Source of the DNA: Podarcis melisellensis
Lineage: Eukaryota
Direction: 5' to 3' (one strand)
NCBI GenBank assembly: GCA_964234715.1
Contig: OZ174289.1
DNA: 64,000 nt
Made by a program: the position numbers and the translations under genes. The notes under the pieces were generated by a model, which did not search any database, had not been told where the DNA came from, and was given only the letters and a program-made list of their open reading frames with translations. This document shows, piece after piece, positions 26,086 to 40,762 of the stretch (its first letter is position 1; every line of letters begins with the position of its first letter).

Positions 26086-27426
26086 CACAATGCTAGCATT
26101 GTGACCAAAAAAGCTGCTATCGAAACACAGTCAGCCACACAGGGCCATCTAGTGCAGCATCCTGTTATCACAGTGGCCAACCAGATATCTGTTGGAAGCT
26201 TAGAAGCAGATCCCGAGCCCAATGATACCCTATCAACCAGCATTCAGAGGCAGATTGCCTCTGACAGAGGAGGCAGAACATAGCCACAATGGTTTGTGGC
26301 TATTGGTAGCCTTATCACCCATGAATTTGTCTAACCCTCTTTAAAAACCCATCAGGTTTTTGGCCAACACTATCTCTTGTGGGAGCAAATTCCATAGCAC
26401 CACATTTCTCTGCATGTACTGTCCTGAATCTTCCAACATTCAGCTTCACCGAATGGTCTCAAGTTCCAGTATATGAGAGATGGAGAAAAACTCCTCAGTG
26501 CATGAAATTGTTACTGCCTTGCTCTGTGTAGTAATCCAAGCAACAGTAGCTGAAGAATCAGAAAGTCTAAGCCACACTCAGAATGGCTGCTCGACAGCGA
26601 CATTGCTGTTTCAAATCAATTACTACGCCTGCAGATAGGCTTCGTATTTTTTACAGAACTGAACATCAGCCTACATTTCAAAATAATTTGACTTAAAGGT
26701 CTCAGGAAAAACTGTAAAATACCTAGAGAGCAGTGTGATGAGAATAACCAAGGCTGTGTGATTAAAGGGAACAATGAAAAAAAAATAGAGGAGGAAAAGG
26801 TCAATTGTAAGGAGAAATTACTAGCTTCACTTGCTGTTCTGTCTCCTATTTGTTGCCCACATCAAATTGACATATAGAGACTACGTACTGGGAATATAGT
26901 TTAATTGCACTGTAAGCTAGTAATTTCTCTTTACAGTCACATTGTGAAAGTGATCCATGAGGCATTTCCCCCCATATGATGTGGTGCCTCTGAGAAAGCT
27001 GGAGAGCAAAGAGCAAAGCTTATTCCACAGGTGCTGGGCACTTTGGACACCACACCCTTGAAGCCTTATGCATATGCATATACTAGAGTGCACTGAGAAG
27101 TACCTAACTGGAAGGATGAGCTGCTTCACAAGTACACTCACTTTTGCCCTCTTCAGGCATTTTTAAAGTATGTTAGGTTAAAGCACAAGGGAGGCGTACA
27201 ATAGGTGAATGTGCCATACCTCTGTCCCTGCTGCCATTTATATCGCCTTCCAGCTCATGGGTACTATTCATACTCAGAGATGCCCCCCCCCCTTATATTT
27301 TAGAACCCTGGAAATTCAAGGTGTCAAATTACACAGGGAGCACTCGTGGAATACACACAGTTCCCCTTTTGGAAGATTATAGATAACTGCAAGAGATTAA
27401 TGTTTGCTAAAAATATATATTTAATA

Positions 27427-34353: not shown

Positions 34354-36563
34354 ATGAAAGCTGTGGGCATTTCAGTGATACCATACTTGCAGTCAAAGTT
34401 GTTATCCAAATAACTGAAGCATGCATTTATTTTTGGACACATGGTTACCCAAACATGATTCTACAGCATGAGCTGCAAAGCAGTTTGACAGCAGGGATGA
34501 GTAGATTGCATGAGAAATTAGCATTTTCCAGCTGAATCCAAGATTATCTCATCATCAAATATGTTTTCTAAAACTTTCAGCAACGTTGGCTTTGAGGATA
34601 CATAATTAATGCCATGCAATTGAGCATGCTTTCCTGATTAAATCAAGGTTTGAAATTTCATATTGGACAAATTACAGAAGAGTGGTCATGTTAGTTTGAT
34701 GTACTAACGCCTGACAACAGCAAGAACTGTCCTGTTGCACCTAAATGGCTATTGTTTACTGCAGAAGAAGCTTTGGAAAACAAGAAGACACCAAGAGGTA
34801 GGGAATTTCCAGCCCATGGGGGATCACAAGCTGATCTGCAAGATCATTTCCCCCAAACCAATGCCACCTGCCCATCAGCTGACATCACTTCTGACATCTA
34901 CTTCTGGGCAGGAAGTCAATCCTGAATTGACTGCACACTCCTGTTTCCAGTAGGGAACAGGAAGGCACAGCCAAACAGAGAAGAATTTAATGCCAGCCAT
35001 TCATCAGCTGATGAGTGGGGGTTAAATCCTGCTCCCTTCAGTAAGATTCCGTGGAAATCCCTTTATGATACAAGGAAGGGTTTTTGCATGGAATCCCCTG
35101 CTAAAGTGGCAAGGAAAACATTGATTTTAGCAGTGCTTTTGCAGGATGATTTGATGTCCTGACTTTATCTGTCCAGTTTGGCCCAGGAGGCCAATTCTGA
35201 TAAGGATTTGGCCTGTGGTGACAAAAAGATCATCCACCCTTCATCGACATGGAATCAGCCTAGAAATCTCACTGGTAAATTGTGACGAAGGGGCTCTATC
35301 ATGCACCACAGTGAGGAGTGAATAAGGGGCTGCATTATTGTCCACTTGTTTGAACTTGCACTTGTAAGCCTGATCACATTGCTTTCAGAAATCAGTATGG
35401 CTCAATGTCATTAGCTTGTGACCTACTAGTTAATGGAGCCTCTGTACCCACAATCTTCCCACACCCTTGTCATGGTGAGTGGGCTTGCATGTTCCTATGA
35501 CCCTTATGAGCGAAGCTGTCAGGAATCTTGTACTCTCAGCAGGGTCACCCAAGGTGGTACGGTCAAGGGGAAGGAGCTAGACAAAGAATGATCCAAGAAG
35601 TCCTCAACGGCAGAACCGGTGGATAATAACAAGTGGTACGTTACAACGGCTGTGAAGGCGGATGAAGGCTGCAGCAGATAGGAATCTACCAGTTTGTTGT
35701 GACTACTTCATGCCATCAGAACAGAACTCTACTGCGAAGACTGTGCATTGGTCAGCGTGCACTGATCTACACACATAAAACAAATCCACACACAAGCGTC
35801 TTCCAAAAACCCAGCCCAAAGTCCCATGGCGATTGGCAAATGGTAACGGGGGCAGGATCGTGAAATCTGGAAGCCCCTAGTCATGAACCGGCACATGGGT
35901 GGTGGATACAGATTCAGTCATTCTGACTCAAGGAATGAGGCAGTTGAGCAGCTTGGCAGCTGTATCCATGACTGAGCAGCCCTTTTTAGGATCCACTCTG
36001 CTCACCCCGAAAAGGTGGAGGGGTTAGAAAAGATGCCCTAAACATAGTCTGCCTCCCCTTTTCCCTGACTGGATCACTGTGCCCAGTGAGGTCACCCAGC
36101 GGTCATAAAAGACAATTGAACTTTGGAACATGGAATATACAGACTTTGTCAGATAACACAGACTGCAAGCATCCTGAACGCAGAACTGCCATCATTGCAA
36201 GAGAGCTGTGACATTTTAACATCGATATTGCAGTGCTTCAAAGGACTCAAAGAGCAAGCGAGGGACAACTGAAGGAAGAAAAAGGAGGCTACACTTTCTT
36301 CTAGAAAGGTCTATCTGAACAAGAACATCAAATACATGGGGTAGGCTTTGCTATCAAAAACCATCTTGTGAAGCTCCTGTCAGAAGTCCCTACAGGCATT
36401 AATGAGCGACTCACAACCCTTCGAATAAAAGTCACCAAAACCCAACAGGATACTATTATAAGCACTTATGCACCGACACTGAATGCCGATGAAGTCATTA
36501 AAGAAAAAATTTACTCTCAGCTGGATACCGTCCTATCAGAGACGCCTAAGGAAGATAAAATTA

Positions 36564-37530
36564 GCCCTGTCACTCATGTGACCCCGCAGAGGCAGGGGTG
36601 GGATGCAGCGGCAGCTCGGACTCTGAACCTCCTCAGGCTCGCCTGTGTTTCCCGCAAGGAGGCGGTGGCCATGGAGGCGGAGGAGAGGCCCAATCCCACA
36701 TGTTTGCCATCGGATGCAGCATGGGCCCGCTAATGCACTTCTGGTATCTGTGGCTTGACTGCACCTTCCCCGCTGCCAGCTTCAGCGGGATCCGCAGCAT
36801 CCTCAAGAAGGTTTTCATCGACCAGATAGTGGCCTCCCCAGCGCTGGGAGTTTGGTACTTCTTGGGGATGGGTTCTCTGGCAGGGCAGAAGCTGGACCAG
36901 AGCTGGCAAGAGTTGGAGGACAATTTCTGGGAGTTCTGTTAGATGGACTGGCACGTGTGGCCCCCGGTGCAGCTGATCAACTTCTTCTTCCTGCCCGCCG
37001 CATACCGGGTGCTCTACATGAACGTCATCACCCTCGGCTGGAACACCTACCTGTCGTACCTGAAGCACCGGCCTAAGCACCCATCACTCAGTGTGGAGGA
37101 AAAGAAGAAACCGACACAGTCGAGATCGAAATGACCGGGTGAACAAGGGCCACTCACTTCCACCAAGGTTGGATCCAGGACTCCGTGGGTGCCGGAGCCA
37201 GCTTTGCGCTCCACCATATTGGTGGCTGGATCTGGGAAGCAGCAGCCCTCTCTATTCCCAGCCGAGGCTTTGACTCCCTCTTCCAGCAGTGCCTTGCATC
37301 CCGAAACAGAGCCAGAGAACTTCAGGGTTGGGGGGCAGATTTGGCATGGGTGTGGGCATCTCCTGACTGCGAACCCCGGTCCTTCCCAATTCATTTGAAA
37401 GTGCTAGATCTTTTTGCGCTTCCCAATTGAAGAAAAAGCAGGTTGCCTTTTTTTGGATGCTGCTGCCAAGACAGGTGCTTCTCTCTGCCGCTAGCACCTC
37501 TGGTTGCTGTTGGGTCAAGGTGGTTTGTCC
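36564..37530 (+). pseudogene. MPV17L2: Processed pseudogene (retrocopy) of Mpv17-like protein 2; coding homology ~36695-37134, then 3' UTR
   Basis: Intronless [20 protein letters not shown]...[21 protein letters not shown]...[23 protein letters not shown]...[22 protein letters not shown] matches recalled MPV17L2 (Mpv17/PMP22 family). In-frame TAG at 36940-36942; the N-terminal ~60 aa are missing. Confidence 0.92.
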
Positions 37531-37652
37531 TTTTAATGACTGGTGTTTTAATGTATTTTTAATTTCCTATTGGAAGCCGCCCAGAGTGGCTGGGAAAACT
37601 CAGCCAGATGGGTGGGTTATAAGTAATAAATTATTATTATTATTATTATTAT
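37530..37652 (+). mobile_element. L2-type LINE 3' tail ending in (ATT)n
   Basis: GGAAGCCGCCCAGAGTGGCTGGG...CAGATGGGTGGGTTATAAGTAATAAA then ~8 ATT units; the same motif occurs inverted at ~40065-40150. Confidence 0.75.
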
Positions 37653-40000
37653 TACTCCTGGGTTATTTTTATGCAGGAGTTGGGTGAGATTTTGATCTGT
37701 GGCCTGGGACTACTGGGAAAGAAGGAGTTGGCAACAGCAACCAGAACGGAATCTTACTTTTGACAATATGTGCAGCACACAACCTTTTTATTACCAACAC
37801 ACTCTTTCAACAGAAAAATAAATTTAGAACTTCATGGAGGCATCCTTGGTCAAACCACTGGCACCTCTAAGACTATGTTATTGTCCGTGCTAAAGATCAA
37901 CGTAATGTGCTCCTTGCCAGAGCTATGACAAGCGCCGATGACTGCTGGACTAATCTTACTCAGCTACGAGTGATCGCCAAAGAAGAAGACCCACAATCTT
38001 TCATCACGCAATGGTTCCAGTCTTTTCAAACCTTCCTTTGATTAAGGAGGCTTGACAAAGGAGTCATTATGAGTGAATATCATGTTAGTGTGCGTTCTGA
38101 ATTGCACTATTTTGCCATTGAAGTGGATCAACTATGTAACAAGTTTCCACTATGCCTCTCTGCTTGTAGGGTCTATTGCATGCTGCATGTGGAATTCCTA
38201 TAGGCATATTGTTGGCCACTGTGAGAACACAATGCTGGAATTAAAGCAGTCTTTGGGCTGCTTTAATTTTACTCTATTGAGTTTGGAATGCTTGACAGAG
38301 GAATCTCTACTGACCAAAGGCGAAATTGCGTCACATTTTGCTCTTAATTGCTGCTTCCCTGACAACGAAACCTATGAGAGTAAGCCAATTAATTTCTCCT
38401 CCCTGCTAATCTCTGATTTTTGTACACCTCCATAAAAAATATGTTTCCCTACTTTCACACAGGCAGACAGAGCTAGAAATATATATTTATATCCTGGAAG
38501 TGACACTCTGAACCTGAAGTGTCAAGATTCCTTTTCTTATTTTAACTCCAATTTTTAATTTTGATTAGATATTTTCTATGGGATGGCAGGGTGACCTCAA
38601 ATTATTCTGTATCAACCTTGTAAGCAAGCTGAGAAAAAATTGCTATGCCGAAAATGTTTACCTGCCTGCTCAGAGTGTACTAGCTTGCGTTTTTATTCTG
38701 GCAGTGAGCAGGCCATTTTCTTATTTAGATAAGTCCAAAAATGGTAAAGGAAATAGAAGAAATAGCACTGTAGGATTCTTTCAGAGTCCCACATCTATCC
38801 ATATTTAATTTGGTTAGTTCCCTTACGAAGGAAGTCTGGAACCCTTGTCATCCTCAAAACCCCTGGCAAACACAGACAATATGACCAAGGTTAAACTCTT
38901 CACCTCCTCCAACCAATTAAGTCCTTATGTACAGCACTGTAATTTCATTCCTCAAAGCTTTGCCTATTATCTGATCCCCTCCTTGCTGTCTCCCGCACGC
39001 CTTATTCTGTTATCATTCTGCCTGGAACAAACACGGCTGTTCCTGTCTACCTGTCTCATTATATGATAGTATAAGAAGCACAGGCTTCCACCAACCCCTC
39101 TTGTTGCCACCTGATTCCAGCTTCTGGTCCACGGTGCTTACTTTTGACAAGTGAGTTGGTAGGGAGAAATTTCTCTATTTCCCCTCCCACTTCCATCCTT
39201 CTGCTATATTTTCAGGCCAGTCATTGAGGAGGAGGCTTTCCTCGATATCTCTTCAAACAAGTGGGGTGGTAGAAGAGTTAGGAGTGAGCCACCCTTTCGC
39301 CTTCTGCCTACCCATGGTTTTAAAAAAACATACCTCCAAATCTGTACATTCATGCTTACCTGCTTGGCTAAATAAATGAACCATTTACAAAATTCTAGCT
39401 CAAGCCAATTGTCAAAGTACTACATATTTGCTATCAGATATTGTCACATGTTGGTCACTGCTGAGTATCAGCTGCCAAATACTGTCACCGCTCATATCAT
39501 ATACCATTAGATTTAGAGCTCTGATAAAATCTTTGAATGCCAAATGCTGGCCATGATGAGCAGAAGTTTGGAGAATATTCTCCAGTGAGTCATATAATGG
39601 GAGAATATTTAATTGTCTATTTGGAGGGGAAGAACAAATGTGTTTGGTCTAGGAACAAAATGAAAAATACATATTTAGTTGAGGCAGTATCCAGTTCAGC
39701 GCAAGAGTTTCTTTTTCATCATCTACCCCCCAGAGTTCCCAAATCTCTTCCAGAAGGTTGGGAAAACCTCTAGAACAGATTTAAGGGGTGCATGGGGGCA
39801 AAGGACAAAATCCTATTGCACAAACACAAATCCTTGCACATACCCAGCTACAGTGGCCTCTATGGTATTTGTGAAGTACAGGAGGTGACCATTTTGAACA
39901 TGCAACCGCTGACCTGCAGGTCTTTTTGGACCCGGATGAAGGTAGAATGGGGGTGAAACAGGGATGGAGGGAAATGGGGAGTAAAAGGGAGGGGCAAGAT

Positions 40001-40762
40001 CATACCCTCCAACATTTCTTCGATGAAAATAGGGACGTCCTATTCCATAACGATAATTTTACTATATATACCCTACACATCTTACTAGGTTGCCCAGCCA
40101 CTCTGGGCAGCTTCCAACATAGTATATAAAAACATAATAAAACATTAAACATTTTTTAAAAAACAAAACCAAAACAAAAACCCTTTCTTTTACTGGATTG
40201 CATTTAGACAGCTTGGGTGTCGGATAACTCCATACTCTCCAACATTTCTCCAATGAAAATAGGGATGTCCTAAGGAAAAGTGGTGGGACGCGGGTGGCAC
40301 TGTGGTCTAAACCACTGAGCCTCTTGGGCTTGCCAATCAAAAGGTCGGCAGTTTGAATCCCCGTGATGGGGTGAGCTCCTGTTGCTCGGTCCCAGCTCCT
40401 GCCAACCTAGCAGTTCGAAAGCACGCCAAAAAGTGCAAGTAGATAAATAGGTACTGCTCCAGCAGGAAGGTAAACGGCATTTCCATGCACTGCTCTGGTT
40501 TTGGTGTTCTGTTGCGCCTGAAGCGGCTTAGTCGTGCTGGCCACATTACCTGGAAAAACTTTCTGCGGAGAAATGCTGGCTCCCTTGGCCTGTAAAGTGA
40601 GATGAGCGCCGCAACCCCAGAGTTGTCTGTGACTGGACTTAACTGTCAGGCGCCCTTTACCTTTTTAAGGAAAAGTGAGACATTCCAAGACCAAATCAGA
40701 AACTGGGATGGCTTTTCTCAATCAGGGACATCCCTGGAAAATAGGGACACTTGGAGAGCCTG
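40001..40762 (+). mobile_element. Composite TIR element with duplicated left end, captured L2 tail and nested Sauria SINE
   Basis: CATAC(C/T)CTCCAACATTTCT...ATGAAAATAGGGA.GTCCTA occurs at 40001 and 40231; right end CACTTGGAGAGCCTG; inverted partial copy at 45445-45605. Confidence 0.7.
40283..40665 (+). mobile_element. Sauria SINE, full length
   Basis: GGGACGCGGGTGGCACTGTGGTCTAAACC head and CCTTTACCTTT tail; 12-bp TSD TAAGGAAAAGTG at 40271-40282 and 40666-40677. Confidence 0.92.

Follow-up and report, generated by a model that had tools for sequence, protein, structure and literature searches.

The window analysed here is the whole 64,000-nt stretch of contig OZ174289.1 of the Podarcis melisellensis assembly GCA_964234715.1, and all positions refer to it. 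On reading the window, an intron-free copy of MPV17L2 together with its 3' UTR was located at 36564–37654, i.e. 1,091 bases that are foreign to the LINE in which they lie. The features of the locus, with the evidence used to define them in brackets, are the following:

36086–36563, plus strand: host LINE endonuclease ORF, 5' part, the insertion target, ending in ...SETPKEDKI (translation; multi-copy in reads)
36564–36694, plus strand: GC-rich 5' piece of the retrocopy, which is not the canonical MPV17L2 exon 1 and meets the exon 2 acceptor exactly
36695–37142, plus strand: MPV17L2 coding exons 2–5, spliced (Pfam PF04117, protein matches, introns in L002/L004, P. lilfordi alignment)
37143–37530, plus strand: MPV17L2 3' UTR, unique sequence (covered by the spliced contigs X15 record 8 and X17 record 16, uninterruptedly, and by the genomic X1 records 4–6, all of parent type)
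37531–37629, plus strand: putative 5'-truncated L2-type LINE/SINE 3' tail (contig depth, fold, published layout)
37630–37654, plus strand: (ATT)8.3 terminal microsatellite, adjoining the target with ATTA microhomology (TRF; same array in P. lilfordi)
37655–38040, plus strand: host LINE endonuclease ORF, 3' part, resuming with LLGYFYAGVG... (translation; intact-copy consensus)

A processed MPV17L2 copy inside a LINE

The coding part carries a premature in-frame TAG at 36940–36942, and the sequence on either side of it was searched as separate pieces, the protein being neither joined nor stop-repaired. Downstream of the TAG, 36943–37131 matched PF04117 (Mpv17_PMP22) in the Pfam search (E 3.9e-17); upstream of it, 36700–36939 was found by protein search to resemble the MPV17L2 proteins of reptiles and birds, the identity being up to 81% with gecko sequences and, for the P. 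lilfordi copy, 91%. Residues 63–202 of Gekko MPV17L2 align with the retrocopy at 75% identity, in an alignment that crosses the TAG. In addition, a 1-nt deletion near 37104, as compared with P. lilfordi, has moved the stop from 37140–37142 to 37132–37134. With a premature stop and a frameshift, the MPV17L2 copy in the P. melisellensis genome is a pseudogene.

Three genomic contigs from more distant squamates (L002, L003 and L004), which are informative for introns and contain no usable 3' UTR, align exon by exon with the window and have GT-AG introns exactly at 36694/5, 36866/7, 36942/3 and 37071/2; comparison with them showed that all four of these exon junctions are without an intron in the retrocopy. 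Contigs of four runs were also compared with 36500–37720 at 80% likeness, with 37619–37720 masked, so that this comparison is silent on the 3' junction. The runs were X1 (same species), X4 (a DNA run under another species label), and X15 and X17 (from two other species, with 82 and 49 million letters, the size of transcriptomes, and presumed to be RNA). A 636-nt contig of X1 showing parent-type differences matches 36695–36866 and 36941–37032, with about 293 extra letters between the two matches. Because introns are missing exactly at the exon junctions of related squamates and of this same-species parent contig, the copy is a true retrocopy, and the combination of MPV17L2 homology, introns absent at the parent junctions and a parent 3' UTR carried along is that of a processed pseudogene. 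The preliminary description of this DNA, according to which a spliced MPV17L2 copy and its 3' UTR run into a LINE-type tail, is therefore confirmed by homology, by the missing introns and by the contigs.

The 5' end of the retrocopy is unusual. Residues 1–62 of Gekko MPV17L2 have no counterpart in the first 131 nt, and these find no match in L002–L004; their only match is the P. lilfordi ortholog (L001), at 79%. At 80% likeness, 36564–36694 is covered in X1 only by the retrocopy's own contig, and the mRNA contigs of X15 and X17 have 322 and 111 nt, respectively, of other sequence upstream of 36695 and 36699. Since the join falls at a splice acceptor, the simplest reading of the sequence is that 36564–36694 represents an alternative first exon.

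The reading frame of the host LINE, as seen in translation, is interrupted after 36563 and resumes at 37655, with LLGYFYAGVG here as against LLGDFNARV in intact copies of the element. An atlas feature search placed the host LINE nearest to endonuclease/exonuclease/phosphatase clusters (0.92–0.96); a Pfam search of its stop-free fragments gave no match. The loose-end consensus of contigs gives GATAAAATTA followed by TCCTCCYGGGTGATTTTAATGCAAGAGTT for the insertion point in those host LINE copies that are intact, and the insert is flanked by ...AAAATTA and CTCCTGGG. Accordingly, either 0–2 bp of the target were lost or up to 4 bp (ATTA) are hidden as microhomology with the tail. The pre-insertion site had been rebuilt in the preliminary description as ...ATTATACTCC, with ATTA microhomology to the tail; the microhomology stands, at a maximum of 4 bp, but the rebuilt letters do not, as the intact sequence is ...GATAAAATTA followed by TCCTCCYGGG.

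The same insertion was found in Podarcis lilfordi, whose locus L001 is collinear with window positions 26548–46928 at 91–98% identity. In pairwise alignment, L001 has the same 5' junction (GATAAAATTA followed by GCCCTGT), the same tail with (ATT)8, and no poly(A). The insertion is old enough to be common to two Podarcis species. The 3' junction differs only by an (ACT)n array, in which the target ACTCCT (37655–37660) has grown to about 10 units (L001:11096–11130); a second microsatellite has been born at the insertion junction in P. lilfordi. About 19 extra bases are present after 37242 in P. lilfordi and in X4, and are absent here and in the parent-type mRNA contigs; this insertion is derived and might be of use as a lineage marker. 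Near-identical pieces of the retrocopy were also seen in X4.

The P. lilfordi copy is annotated as an intron-free gene ('mpv17 2', P0027; L001:10001–10561) with an intact 186-aa ORF, and the P. muralis UniProt model P0051 represents the same retrocopy locus, with host-LINE sequence spliced on at the N-terminus. In the protein collection searched, no lacertid MPV17L2 protein with a canonical N-terminus was found, and the only Podarcis matches were P0027 and P0051. It may be that assemblies or annotations lack the true lacertid parent. It should be kept in mind by users of these annotations that, in the P. lilfordi and P. muralis protein sets searched, the MPV17L2 name is borne by the retrocopy locus.

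The 3' tail and the parent transcript

The unique 3' UTR, about 390 nt long, starts after the ancestral stop (37140–37142) and leads into a repeat part of about 124 nt overall, including a hairpin and the terminal (ATT)8. Across 37525–37647, the summed contig depth rises from about 30–190 to 10^5–4x10^6, and thousands of contigs match. The tail is a member of a very abundant repeat family. Many contigs begin to match at 37531, with an upstream consensus different from the MPV17L2 UTR; because of this, the tail in the UTR is regarded as a 5'-truncated member of the family. According to the contig tables, another copy of the tail family ends in ...GGGGTATAAATTATTATTATTA, that is, again in (ATT)n.

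RNA folding gave a hairpin at 37577–37615 consisting of a 7-bp outer and an 8-bp inner stem (15 bp, interrupted) with an AAAA loop, and with a z-score of -2.99 against shuffles. The hairpin lies directly 5' of TTATAAGTAATAAATT(ATT)n, an AATAAA occurs within the tail at 37625–37630, and the terminal (ATT)8.3 array at 37630–37654 has a purity of 100% in TRF. The 3' end therefore shows what is expected of an L2-clade tail, namely a stable stem-loop just 5' of a short terminal repeat. In P. melisellensis no A-run separates the tail from the flank, the (ATT)8 directly adjoining the target, and no target-site duplication of at least 5 bp is present here or in the P. lilfordi ortholog. Neither of the two marks of L1-type insertions, a 3' poly(A) and a target-site duplication of about 7–20 bp, is found in the retrocopy. 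As first described, the 3' end thus has some eight ATT units, no poly(A) and no long target-site duplication, and this was borne out by TRF, by reading of the window and by the P. lilfordi ortholog.

A second, more diverged copy of the tail is present in the window at about 40043–40230, on the minus strand. It is flanked (window 40001–40272) by a 42-nt direct repeat with 90% identity, suggestive of a target-site duplication of unusual length. Beside it, 40290–40500 on the minus strand resembles a tRNA-headed SINE of the Sauria type. Because of the 42-nt repeat around this second copy, the lack of a duplication at the retrocopy fits the tail family without being diagnostic of it.

The tail was compared by eye with published L2-derived CORE-SINE tails (Ther1/MIR, tuaMIRc, AFC and Squam3; PMC7983390, Fig. 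S2B), with which it shares the order of blocks: AAGC.GC, YNGAG, the inner hairpin, the closing GCGS/GTGG arm, TATAA, an AT-rich spacer and, often, (ATT)n. The label 'L2-type', given by inspection of this published alignment rather than by a classifier, fits this layout. For Squam3, a squamate SINE with an L2-type tail, very few target-site duplications have been reported (PMC7983390). A permissive Rfam scan of 37450–37700 returned chance-level matches only and no LINE 3' element, and no full-length element bearing this tail is present within the window.

The comparison with the four runs also provided information on the parent gene. Two spliced, parent-type contigs run from the CDS through the 3' UTR into the repeat, one (X15 record 8) spanning 36695–37606 and the other (X17 record 16) 36699–37560, and a 103-nt genomic contig of the same species (X1 record 6), separate from the retrocopy's own contig, spans 37464–37559. 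The X15 and X17 contigs bear variants of the intron-containing parent contig, and they share with X1 record 6 the letters 37495T, 37496G and 37508C as well as an inserted CTT at 37477. The evidence consists of contigs, not raw reads, and all three bridging contigs end inside the repeat, reaching 29–76 nt past 37531 (two of the three only 29–30 nt, and the furthest to 37606). With X15 and X17 presumed to be RNA, these contigs show that the tail is already part of the parent MPV17L2 mRNA, at the corresponding position of its 3' UTR. It had been proposed that a tail in the parent's 3' UTR licensed the mRNA for copying, and that this could be recognized by a tail at the same UTR position; such a tail was indeed found in three data sets.

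Two further contigs of X1 (records 4 and 5) cover 37300–37482 with parent-like 3' UTR sequence that is about 14% and 7% off the retrocopy, and their depth exceeds that of the retrocopy. They may represent two haplotypes, or else two copies that resemble the parent.

Origin of the retrocopy

In our opinion, the locus is probably a processed pseudogene that arose when the reverse transcriptase (RT) of an L2-clade, stringent-type LINE copied, in trans, an MPV17L2 transcript with the tail. That the copying enzyme was an L2, as well as the details of priming, we infer. The 3' UTR of the parent would end in a 5'-truncated L2-type tail, in which the hairpin is followed by a spacer rich in TATAA/AATAAA and by an (AUU)n run. 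The L2-clade enzyme would recognize the hairpin, a nick in an older LINE copy, at the AT-rich site ATTA, would allow priming on the AUU repeats, and the spliced RNA would then be copied to its 5' end; the template would have been a non-canonical isoform, with the 131-nt 5' exon in place of exon 1. Hairpin recognition and priming on AUU would yield a product ending in (ATT)n, without poly(A) and without appreciable duplication. Stringent L2 LINEs depend on their cognate 3' stem-loop, to which they bind (PMC4176376), and this need limits which cellular RNAs can be copied by stringent LINEs (reviewed in PMC3747384 and PMC5470649). An mRNA with an L2-type tail at the end of its 3' UTR would qualify for such copying, and the product observed fits the prediction. 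This is one case only, tail-ended retrocopies having been considered within this window.

Other routes to the same structure can be envisaged. The retrocopy may have arisen by tailless retroposition through L1 or another relaxed RT, the TAAT end of the nicked target annealing by chance to the AUU run, in which case the hairpin would be irrelevant. The ATTA microhomology at the 3' junction suits such chance annealing, and tailless retropseudogenes driven by L1, some of them derived from mRNAs, are reported to arise by internal priming and complementarity to the integration site (PMC5322556). However, the perfect tailless copies analysed in that study were chosen for discernible duplications, and none of at least 5 bp is present here. 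In addition, the retrocopy ends precisely where members of the L2-type tail family naturally end. L1 nicking leaves T-rich primer ends, and the nick site deduced for the retrocopy is unlike this type. Taken together, we regard tailless retroposition as unlikely.

The remaining two explanations concern the way in which UTR and tail came together. An L2 RT may have begun on an L2 or SINE RNA and jumped to the MPV17L2 mRNA after about 124 nt, producing a chimera, and chimeric retrocopies formed by template switching are indeed well known (PMC5470649; PMC5729268). Nevertheless, three data sets show the tail joined to this very UTR position in the parent gene and its transcripts, and template switching, which had been put forward at the outset as the alternative to tail licensing, is very improbable. 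The other explanation invokes two events, an L1-made retrocopy followed by insertion of an L2 or a SINE at its 3' end that removed the poly(A). Nested insertions are common in the region, but neither species has retained an A-run or a duplication, the frame of the host LINE is continuous across the whole insert, and in the parent UTR and tail meet just as they do here. The preliminary description had named orthologous alleles with a poly(A) and no L2 tail, the sign of a later, independent L2 insertion, as a finding that would overturn its reading; the P. lilfordi ortholog, with its tail and no poly(A), is not of this kind, and hardly any credence can be given to two events. Because the repeat begins in the parent 3' UTR where it begins in the retrocopy, a later insertion is effectively ruled out and a template switch is unneeded.

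Relation to known systems and significance

If copied by an L2-clade enzyme, the MPV17L2 retrocopy has its closest analogy in the mobilization of SINEs by stringent L2-clade LINEs (UnaL2/UnaSINE, ZfL2, Squam3). In these systems, as here, a LINE-derived hairpin and short repeats end the RNA, and the product ends in repeats and has no poly(A); few target-site duplications are reported for Squam3. As in SINE-like trans-mobilization, the tail was present on the template RNA before retroposition, judging from X15 record 8, X17 record 16 and X1 record 6. In contrast to those systems, the passenger in the present case is a spliced pol II host mRNA with the tail within its 3' UTR rather than a pol III SINE, and there is a single retrocopy instead of a family of copies. 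With the processed pseudogenes that L1 makes in vertebrates, the retrocopy shares the intron-free cDNA and UTR decaying at a new site, but it differs from them in having no poly(A), no 7–20 bp duplication and a LINE tail at its end.

In hominids, exon trapping or 5' transduction by SVA elements results in host exons that are spliced upstream of the non-autonomous element and carried along by its partner LINE. Host exons travel with the RNA of a non-autonomous element in that system, too, but SVA relies on L1 and poly(A), whereas here a truncated tail fragment would provide the licence and the enzyme would be of the L2 type.

Reviews explain the small number of retrogenes in birds and monotremes by the poor ability of stringent LINEs such as CR1 to copy host mRNAs (PMC3747384; PMC5470649). 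In the form in which Suh (2015) is cited in PMC5470649 and PMC5729268, the scarcity of bird retrogenes is attributed to the need of CR1 for a hairpin plus a microsatellite. The idea, as far as these citations convey it, is the same as here, namely that a stringent LINE copies only RNAs that end like itself; unlike that proposal as cited, MPV17L2 would be a positive example, for L2 and in a lizard, and not an argument from scarcity. Tail-dependent trans-mobilization is already established for SINEs and in assays. A natural retrocopy of a spliced mRNA licensed by an embedded L2 tail was not described in the literature that we searched, to which Suh (2015) itself did not belong.

The MPV17L2 case makes the argument about stringent LINEs and scarce retrogenes testable. 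The genes that can be duplicated are predicted to be those with a cognate tail in their 3' UTR, and the products are predicted to be without poly(A), to end in a microsatellite and to have little or no target-site duplication. We put forward, tentatively and as a possibility that falls somewhat short of an even chance, that a gene is licensed for retroposition once its 3' UTR has taken up a tail from a stringent LINE that is active; in MPV17L2, the tail also supplies AATAAA. If this is true, L2-type elements would be a real source of gene retrocopies that has been overlooked, both in lizards and, extending the argument, in other vertebrates that are poor in L1 or rich in L2/CR1, and their products would form a recognizable class of copies, devoid of both poly(A) and duplications, that standard retrocopy screens would miss or misread.
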